A stretch of DNA of 63,209 nucleotides, counting the filler, from Olpidium bornovanus S191 (taxonomy: Eukaryota; Fungi; Olpidiomycota): NCBI GenBank assembly GCA_017911155.1. It is 28 parts of 28 records of this genome, joined end to end, with 100 filler letters (N's around TTAATTAATTAA, not from the genome) between each part and the next. Parts side by side here need not be neighbours in the genome. Positions count along the whole stretch, not along the records: positions 51,013 to 52,344 come from JAEFCI010003934.1; 27 more parts are not named here. The stretch is one strand, 5' to 3'. The notes under the pieces were generated by a model. The model did no database searches. It saw nothing but the letters and a program-made list of their open reading frames with translations, and was not told the DNA's origin. Numbering within the stretch: the stretch's first letter is position 1; each line of letters opens with the position of its first letter. Below are positions 50,767-52,344 of the stretch, in pieces. The translations under genes and the position numbers were made by a program.

Positions 50767-51061
50767 AAAAAGGCGAAGAAAAAAAAATTCCTTTGTTTGC
50801 GAAGGACAAACCAAATATCTGACTTTGCCATACCCTTCCCTCTCGCTCTCCCCCGTTTCCCCCACTCCCGTCTTCACTGCTACTTCCTCAAATATAAATT
50901 AAAAGAGACATGNNNNNNNNNNNNNNNNNNNNNNNNNNNNNNNNNNNNNNNNNNNNTTAATTAATTAANNNNNNNNNNNNNNNNNNNNNNNNNNNNNNNN
51001 NNNNNNNNNNNNAAAAAAAGAAAAAAAAACACCCCGCCGGGCCCAAAATAGGCCCCCCCAC

Positions 51062-51103
<42 letters not shown>

Positions 51104-51927
51104 AAAAAATCAAAAAAAAAAAGACGCGAAGGCGGACGCGAAAGGCTGATGCGAAAATGCGGGTGGGGAATGCGGAAATATATATGATCGCAGGAACTGC
51201 AAATAGCAGATGCGCGCGGGAGACAAAATCGCGGGATTGAGGAAAGGCAGGATTGCCCCGGGAATTGCGGCAGAAGGTCGGCGGCCGAAGGCGGCAAGCA
51301 AAGGCGGCCGCGGCGAACGGCCGATGCGGCGCGCTAGCTTGCGGGTCGGTTAGATAATATAATGACCATTGGATTTGCTTCGAGTGATGCTGGGAAGATT
51401 CCCCCTAGCTCTCGATATGAATGCGTTAAAAATCAACGTTAACCCTTGACTTCACAACCGTGGAAACCGAAAGCCCCAAAAAATATAGTTTTCCCTGGAT
51501 TCCCCTCATCATTCCCGTAACACGTCCACCGGGACAGTCTTTTCAACATCGCCGGCTAACCATCCTTTTTCTAAAGATTCGTTATATTAACATCCTGTAA
51601 GAGTTCAATAGTAAACCACATAAACATTGGTTTGCTTTGCCCCGAGAAAGGCGGCGATACAAAACAGGGCGGCGAAAGTCAGATTTAGGGGGGGGGCAAA
51701 AAAAAGAGCTGCAAGGCAAAAAGTGAAACAGTATGGCGGTAATCGAGACAAAAAAAAAACGCAAAAGAAGGAAATGCACAATTCGGCGGCTGCTCGAAGA
51801 TCTCCTCGCAAACGTGGTAAGGGGGGGGTACCGAGTGCTGAGAGGGAATTAGGAGCGGCGCCGCACTATGGCCGCGTTTCCCGGCGCCCTCTATTTCTCT
51901 CTTGGTCTCTTATCTTTTTTTTTTCAC

Positions 51928-52344
51928 GACTTCTTCATCCTGTAAACGACTGCTCCTATGACCCCGACGACAACGACGGCACATCCTATGGCGATTCCTA
52001 CGATCGCTCCCGTGCCTAATCCGCCGTCATCGTCCGGCGAGTCCGTCTGCGTCGCCGTGCTGGTGCTGGTGCTGCTGGACGTGGTCACAGAAGGAGTGGC
52101 GGTGGCCGAATCGTCCCCGAGGAGAAGGACGAACTGGGTCAGGTGATTGGCCGAGCAGGTGGCGACGCGCGTCGTCTTGTCGAAGCTCGTGGTGATGCCT
52201 GCCGTGCTCGGCTTGTTGATACTCGTGTCGATGTACGCGCAGGTGACCTTCTTGTTCGTCAGATCCACGCCGGACGGCACGCCGATGAGGAGCGTGATGG
52301 GCTGCGCGAGACCCGTTACGGAGATCTCTTGACTGCTGTCCATG
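51928..52344 (-). CDS. GPS/GAIN-domain single-pass membrane protein, 5'-partial
   Basis: ITLLI...VTCAYID...STAGI...ATCSANHLTQFVLL (GPS with HL/T site), S/T-rich stalk, one TM helix GAIVGIAIGCAVVVVGVIGAVV, then YRMKK and a splice donor. Confidence 0.72.

Follow-up and report, generated by a model that had tools for sequence, protein, structure and literature searches.

The window, a stretch of 63,209 nucleotides, contains part of a coding region in its piece at positions 51013-52344. The overall best explanation of this region (probability about 0.6) is that it represents the 3' end of a gene whose product is a giant, type-I-like glycoprotein of the surface or the secretory pathway, with the order REJ-GAIN(GPS)-mucin stalk-one transmembrane helix-five-residue tail and with a self-cleaving joint to its anchor. 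Its sequence features suggest a polycystin-1/REJ ectodomain module that lacks PLAT and lacks a multi-pass channel or receptor body. That the fragment in the window is a GAIN/GPS domain is very probable. It is homologous to accepted GPS proteins by phmmer and hhalign and a GAIN fold is predicted in two relatives, so the domain call made in the initial annotation holds.

The reading frame and its relatives

The piece holds one convincing coding feature, a minus-strand ORF (52343-51927) of 139 residues that is open at the piece edge and stops at a TGA codon (51926-51924). Its translation is MDSSQEISVTGLAQPITLLIGVPSGVDLTNKKVTCAYIDTSINKPSTAGITTSFDKTTRVATCSANHLTQFVLLLGDDSATATPSVTTSSSTSTSTATQTDSPDDDGGLGTGAIVGIAIGCAVVVVGVIGAVVYRMKKS*, and its layout is ...VTGLAQPITLLIGVPSGVDLTNKKVT-C35-AYIDTSINKPSTA-G49-I-TTSFDKTTRVAT-C63-SAN-H67-L68-T69-QFVLLLGDD, followed by a 36-residue acidic S/T-rich stretch, AIVGIAIGCAVVVVGVIGAVVY, and RMKKS-stop. 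The leading M is an internal residue and not a start codon; the relative L001 has T there. Sequence and coordinates agree with the initial annotation, which placed the HLT motif at 52145-52137, exactly where it lies. Its start coordinate, 51928, differs trivially, being one base inside the last sense codon, whose final base is 51927. The ectodomain is lost at the contig edge, as was also noted there, with the ORF still open at 52343. The features of the piece are as follows.

51927..52343, minus strand: final 139 codons of a large gene, with the reading frame open at the edge; the upstream portion (GAIN-A, REJ and whatever precedes them) is cut off
52113..52343, minus strand: last six beta-strands of GAIN subdomain B (residues 1-77), mapped on the AF2 model of L001 and by Foldseek to GAIN crystals
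52119..52241, minus strand: GPS motif proper, C35-L75 (C-A-Y-I-D...P-S-T-A-G-I...C-S-A-N-H-L-T-Q-F-V-L-L-L), below the Pfam GPS cutoff and aligned by hhalign to Pfam-valid GPS proteins
52137..52145, minus strand: H67-L68-T69, predicted cis-autoproteolysis site with the cut between L68 and T69, from the sequence and from its place in the turn between the last two model strands
52008..52115, minus strand: stalk, residues 77-112, acidic, S/T-rich and mucin-like in composition
51942..52007, minus strand: single transmembrane helix, residues 113-134 (AIVGIAIGCAVVVVGVIGAVVY), Kyte-Doolittle peak 2.83, kept in L001 and P0004
51924..51941, minus strand: basic five-residue cytoplasmic tail RMKKS and TGA stop, from the sequence
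51772..51923, minus strand: probable 3' UTR, alignable to the 3' ends of the L001 and L004 contigs

The relatives come from these sources.

L001: Logan contig from SRR10938833, 8,071 nt, carrying P0012, a cluster-mate of P0002
L004: Logan contig from SRR10938835, carrying P0002
L002: JGI metagenome 3300013895, carrying P0004

The stalk is the fastest-evolving part of the ORF in comparison with L001, and it is probably O-glycosylated and disordered. Sub-threshold Podoplanin and VSP matches of the fragment in Pfam reflect stalk composition only. The hydropathy profile has one strong hydrophobic segment (residues 106-137), and the tail and stop beyond it are kept as KMKKS* in L001 and L004 and as FMRK* in P0004. 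A di-lysine ER-retrieval signal in the C-terminal KKS was considered and rejected, because the lysines stand at -3/-2 and not at -4/-3 or -5/-3, and P0004 ends in MRK. In the other ~900 nt of the piece no tRNA gene turned up, and neither an Rfam match nor an ORF there is credible. This non-coding part is rich in homopolymers (51021-51122 and 51688-51924, plus strand), with A39 at 51063-51101 and further runs of A11, A10, A9, G9, G8, C7 and T10, and these runs give rise to minus-strand ORFs that are Phe-rich but spurious. A homopolymer run at the piece end probably broke the assembly.

The ORF and the 3' end of L001 are identical at 118 of 139 amino acids and 379 of 417 nucleotides (90.9% in coding sequence), with a dN/dS of ~0.3 in the GPS and transmembrane parts. 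In the probable 3' UTR, 158 aligned columns, including 14 gaps, show 76% identity. Ahead of its ATG, L001 carries an in-frame stop; an ORF of 2,247 aa follows, the frame then changes at an A7 run, and 362 more codons lead to ...KMKKS*. An intron between these two ORFs was rejected in favor of a homopolymer error, because the frames switch at the A7 run and L004, with A6 at the same run, reads through. As read from the two contigs, the gene would be one ORF of roughly 2,600 aa. Homopolymer differences (L001:6817-6824 and L004:~932; A7 vs A6 and A3 vs A4) interrupt the ORF at sites that are not the same in the two contigs. Automatic calls consequently split the L001 gene into 2,247 + 281 aa and leave L004 with a C-terminal call of 258 aa (P0002). 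Both contigs, from two runs, end ~150 nt past the stop, and this, together with the stop before the L001 ATG, indicates that they are mRNA-like assemblies. The ORF of P0004 has the same ending, and S/T-rich repeats extend upstream of it to the contig edge of L002.

In these relatives a REJ domain occupies the region that is cut off in the window. With a Pfam cutoff of 25, it scores 91.8 bits (E 4.7e-26) in L001:5100-6821, where it ends directly before GAIN-A, and 73.5 bits in P0004 residues 1-500, again directly upstream of GAIN. The N-terminal side of L001 (87-6830) carries an EGF-like motif, a weak GT1_4 match, Thr-rich mucin blocks, HPxFPSGGPT repeats and a weak TIG match, as well as a strong bacterial-type Glycos_transf_2 domain (93.5 bits, residues 588-711). 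A type-II signal anchor is probable from the sequence at about residues 80-100. The L001 ORF thus combines an enzyme with a polycystin-type REJ-GAIN-TM part and has a hydrophobic anchor at each end. Our literature search, which was not exhaustive, found no description of a glycosyltransferase and mucin fusion to REJ-GAIN. The source of L001 is probably not an animal.

The close family is rare, with three sequences among 1.84 billion representative proteins. Searches for homologous proteins with the fragment, with P0004 495-825 and with the 2,247-aa ORF of L001 returned only the query itself or P0001, a stalk and transmembrane look-alike. Scans of metagenomes in the JGI collection and of prokaryote genomes gave no relatives, an exact look-up of the 139-aa protein gave no record, and the literature yielded nothing usable on the SRA and JGI accessions or on REJ or GAIN in fungi.

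Homology, fold and disulfides of the GAIN domain

Compared directly with the curated Pfam GPS model (PF01825), the 139-aa fragment scores 13.1 bits (E 0.14, residues 44-72) and does not pass the cutoff of 22.5; P0004 is also below it at 12.8 bits. The score of the fragment is low because both conserved Trp are replaced. A loose GPS regular expression matches in 5 of 20,000 shuffles of the piece, and the motif alone is therefore weak evidence in a genome-wide scan. A phmmer comparison of the fragment with PDB sequences gave no match. Homology nevertheless decides in favor of the domain, since the matches found by phmmer and by hhalign are significant.

With residues 1-79 as the query against the 1.84 billion representatives, and with E values calculated for the whole library, phmmer returned ten matches, three of which (P0005-P0007) are repetitive proteins that match spuriously. 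The closest family members are P0002 (86% identity) and P0004 (59% identity). P0003, an animal-type adhesion GPCR (aGPCR) of 2,020 aa with six GPS repeats and 7tm_2, matches at E 7e-20. P0008 and P0010 match at E 1.8e-4 and 6.9e-4 and themselves pass the Pfam GPS cutoff at 35.9 and 37.8 bits. The list also includes P0011, a weaker match (E 9.5e-4), and P0009, in which a GPS-like motif is followed by a stalk and one transmembrane helix. When a close-family profile of three sequences is compared with Pfam-valid GPS segments by hhalign, the probability is 96.8% and the E value 3e-10, with 65 columns aligned in the register expected. Once canonical members are added, the broader profile reaches GAIN chains of aGPCRs in the PDB (E 3.5e-9). 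The profile of the three close sequences alone is not significant against PDB sequences (7qu8 at E 0.47, in the correct register), and we therefore rely on the hhalign result and on the fold.

The AF2 model of L001:6823-7740 (pLDDT 80.6, pTM 0.77), which like the other model was made from an alignment of only nine rows, has six helices followed by a beta-sandwich. Its top Foldseek match in the PDB is the BAI3 GAIN structure 4dlo (E 3e-10, TM-score 0.57-0.63). The next is BAI2 8oek (E 2e-9, TM-score 0.64, rmsd 4.3 over 314 columns), and the GAIN domains of CELSR1, CD97 and GPR110 follow. A model of P0004 residues 480-835 (pLDDT 69.2) has the same top matches, BAI3 and BAI2, at E 5e-6, and the TM-scores of the two models against GAIN crystals range from 0.5 to 0.64. 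The full GAIN plan of helical subdomain A plus beta-sandwich subdomain B (~320 residues) is therefore predicted in relatives 85% and 59% identical to the fragment, and the window itself holds the last six strands only. The GAIN-B sandwich, whose absence would have counted against the initial annotation, is thus predicted in both relatives and matches solved GAIN structures.

In the numbering of the 139-aa fragment, where residue n is residue n+223 of the L001 model (pLDDT 82-89 in that part), the six strands span residues 16-21, 31-39, 44-46, 50-55, 60-65 and 70-77. The HLT motif falls in the turn between the last two of these strands, which matches its position in the description of GAIN by Arac 2012 (PMC3321182). 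Alignment columns that are invariant within residues 1-77 are V9, L12, P15, I16, C35, Y37, G49, C63, H67, T69 and F71. Axonemal doublet-microtubule chains (9fqr_Hn, 8j07_k3 and 8glv_AE) also appear among the Foldseek matches of the L001 model at E 1e-7 to 1e-6 with TM-scores of 0.37-0.41, and these probably reflect similarity of the modeled helical bundle alone.

The canonical set of four Cys and two Trp is incomplete in the window. The fragment retains C1 (C35) and C3 (C63), but I50 and A65 stand at the C2 and C4 positions, and I38 and P45 at the two Trp positions; the loss of both Trp is absent from the initial annotation. In latrophilin-1 the GPS disulfides are C801-C832 and C820-C834, which corresponds to C1-C3 and C2-C4 pairing (Arac 2012, PMC3321182). 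With C2 and C4 absent, exactly one disulfide is therefore lost, which agrees with the earlier proposal of a paired loss that leaves one disulfide. Homologues show an all-or-none pattern for these two positions: both are absent in P0009, P0010, P0011 and all six P0003 repeats, and both are present in P0008. Polycystin-1 likewise has a single GPS disulfide (C3015-C3043) and is still autoproteolysed (PMC4810088). The one-disulfide GPS is consequently the known polycystin-1 state and not a new one, and in combination with the REJ domain upstream in the relatives it places the module in the polycystin-1/REJ type. The six GPS-bearing repeats of P0003 are in tandem, and each has the form C.YYD...WSDKGS...C-S-Y-N-H-M-T. 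A one-disulfide GPS therefore occurs in aGPCRs too, and GAIN-like units can be tandem.

Predicted cleavage and the proposed membrane joint

The H-L-T/S triad is intact as H67-L68-T69, and H67, T69 and F71 are invariant in the nine aligned homologues, distant ones included. On this sequence evidence, autoproteolysis at L68/T69 is somewhat favored. A rather unlikely alternative, although the strongest of those considered, is a genuine GAIN fold without cleavage, in which HLT is a relic, the domain then being a rigid membrane-proximal spacer or an interaction platform. It is consistent with the weakening of two of the three features that hold the scissile turn (Arac 2012, PMC3321182), since one of two disulfides is gone and both Trp are replaced. 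Uncleaved GAIN domains do exist, and BAI3 (Arac 2012, PMC3321182) and BAI2, the best structural matches, were both crystallized uncleaved, BAI3 in spite of an acceptable GPS motif. The invariance of the three residues argues for a site that is still in use, however, as does the efficient autoproteolysis of polycystin-1 with its one-disulfide GPS (PMC4810088). A REJ domain directly upstream is also the context in which polycystin-1 is cleaved.

If the site is active, the GAIN fold would strain the L68-T69 bond in the ER, and T69 would attack this bond in an N-O acyl shift followed by hydrolysis, which would cut the chain. The huge N-terminal fragment would then stay clamped non-covalently on TQFVLLLG, the last beta-strand, which would be carried by a C-terminal fragment of ~71 residues made up of this strand, the stalk, the transmembrane helix and RMKKS. 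Such a cut may serve as a force-sensitive breakable joint between the large glycosylated ectodomain and the membrane anchor, comparable to that of SEA-domain mucins and to release of the polycystin-1 N-terminal fragment. The C-terminal fragment has a tail of five residues and no signaling domain, so a breakable joint is likelier than cis-activation of a receptor. A breakaway-anchor role is tentative. With the probable N-terminal anchor of an L001-type protein, the N-terminal fragment would stay membrane-bound after the cut, and this makes simple shedding less likely. The mechanosensory, adhesive or zoospore-attachment role offered in the initial annotation is speculation.

SEA-domain mucins such as MUC1 have a juxtamembrane autoproteolytic domain and an O-glycosylated ectodomain that is held non-covalently on a single-pass stub with a small tail. 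The resemblance is one of analogy only: the joint is similarly breakable by force, but the fold and the cleavage motif (G/SVVV) are unrelated, and Pfam gives no SEA match in the 139-aa fragment.

A very improbable extension of the cleaved reading is that the protein represents a GAIN module that is 'unlinked' and belongs to a non-holozoan, which might be a zoosporic fungus. After cleavage and force-driven loss of the N-terminal fragment, the TQFVLLL strand would be a tethered agonist that acts in trans on a separately encoded adhesion-type 7TM receptor or on a PKD2-like channel. Separate genes encode GAIN and the adhesion-type 7TM domain in non-holozoans, and the 7TM receptor lacks a GAIN of its own (PMC12716839). 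If trans-agonism were true, it would represent an ancestral split state of aGPCR and polycystin activation, and the glycosyltransferase domains on the same polypeptide could couple surface or Golgi enzyme activity to the cleavable joint.

Architecture and comparison with known systems

The favored REJ-GAIN-stalk-one-helix order requires that the gene end where the ORF does. It might instead be an internal part of a conventional PLAT/11-TM polycystin-1-like gene or 7-TM aGPCR gene whose remaining transmembrane exons lie past an unrecognised intron. The piece is short, small T-rich and Phe-rich ORFs occur on the same strand in the 900 nt past the stop, and the literature credits GAIN only to adhesion GPCRs and PKD1-like proteins (PMC11697300). 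This possibility is very improbable. The in-frame stop 5-6 codons past the transmembrane helix is kept in the window, in L001 and L004, and in P0004, which is 59% identical. The mRNA-like contigs L001 and L004 end ~150 nt past that stop with no further coding sequence, and alignable downstream sequence falls to 76% identity with indels, as in a UTR. The small downstream ORFs are low-complexity products of homopolymers. Pfam finds neither the 7tm_2 domain of aGPCRs nor the PLAT/LH2 domain that accompanies a multi-pass body (usually 11-TM) in the window or in the relatives, and the chain has one transmembrane helix and then a stop in the window, L001, L004 and P0004.

These results uphold part of the architecture first proposed for the fragment. 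The S/T-rich stalk followed by only one C-terminal transmembrane helix agrees with hydropathy and with the stop after the helix, which is conserved in three homologues. The single-pass description is correct for the C-terminal end but may fail for the whole protein, given that the full-length relative, 85% identical, probably has an N-terminal signal anchor too. The weakest alternative, a chance C...G...C...HLT.F pattern in an S/T-rich membrane protein without GAIN ancestry, would fit the Pfam E value of 0.14 and the regular expression, which would give some chance matches genome-wide, but it is effectively refuted by library-wide significant phmmer matches to Pfam-valid GPS proteins, by the hhalign result, by the GAIN fold predicted in both relatives and by their upstream REJ.

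The GAIN-stalk-1TM layout that the initial annotation called unusual has a precedent in the sea-urchin proteins SpREJ1, 8 and 9 of the PKD1 family, which have REJ, GPS and one transmembrane segment. As in these proteins, the relatives of the window protein have REJ and then GPS just upstream of a single transmembrane helix, with a large modular glycosylated ectodomain. The SpREJ proteins differ in having C-type lectin, EGF or PKD repeats and a signal peptide, whereas L001 has a signal anchor, GT4-like and GT2 domains, Thr-rich mucin blocks and a weak TIG match. No sequence similarity was detected between the SpREJ proteins and the relatives outside REJ and GPS.

Polycystin-1 shares with this family the REJ domain immediately before GAIN (seen in the relatives), the C1-C3 disulfide as the only one, the H-L-T triad and a Cys four residues before the His. 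Unlike polycystin-1, the window protein has no PLAT, no 11-TM body and no C-terminal coiled coil; its cytoplasmic part is five residues long, an S/T-rich stalk of ~35 residues separates GAIN from the membrane, and both GPS Trp are replaced. The GAIN domains of aGPCRs (BAI3/ADGRB3 4DLO, BAI2/ADGRB2 8OEK, CELSR1, CD97 and GPR110) are the best structural matches. They share helical subdomain A and beta-sandwich subdomain B, of which the last five strands constitute the GPS, and the post-cleavage strand TQFVLLL of the window resembles the tethered-agonist core TxFAVLM. In contrast to aGPCRs, the window protein has neither 7tm_2 nor HormR and is short of one disulfide and both Trp, and identity in the structural alignments is only 10-13%.

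The module is thus largely familiar, and its layout is less unusual than was first claimed. GAIN is also found in Dictyostelium and Tetrahymena (Arac 2012, PMC3321182), and pre-metazoan forms of the domain are barely characterized. The present family shows a polycystin-type REJ-GAIN that ends in a bare single-pass anchor, to which the full-length relative adds glycosyltransferase and mucin regions. Given a fungal or other non-holozoan source, the family would provide a concrete case of GAIN that stands free of a 7TM or 11TM body. With its C-terminal fragment of ~71 residues, it would then also be a small, tractable system for studying what GAIN autoproteolysis does when no receptor can be activated by it. 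Should the source prove to be an animal or a close relative of animals, the protein would simply be another member of the REJ family.

A more distant protein, P0009 (L003:10001-11371), has the order GPS-like motif-stalk-one transmembrane helix with a cytoplasmic tail of ~70 residues. No REJ match occurs around it on L003, a gene-dense 90-kb eukaryotic metagenome contig with 61% GC whose called genes are long uninterrupted ORFs. A 986-aa ORF that contains a YHYH domain overlaps, at its end, the start of P0009. More than one protist lineage may therefore have GAIN-1TM proteins.
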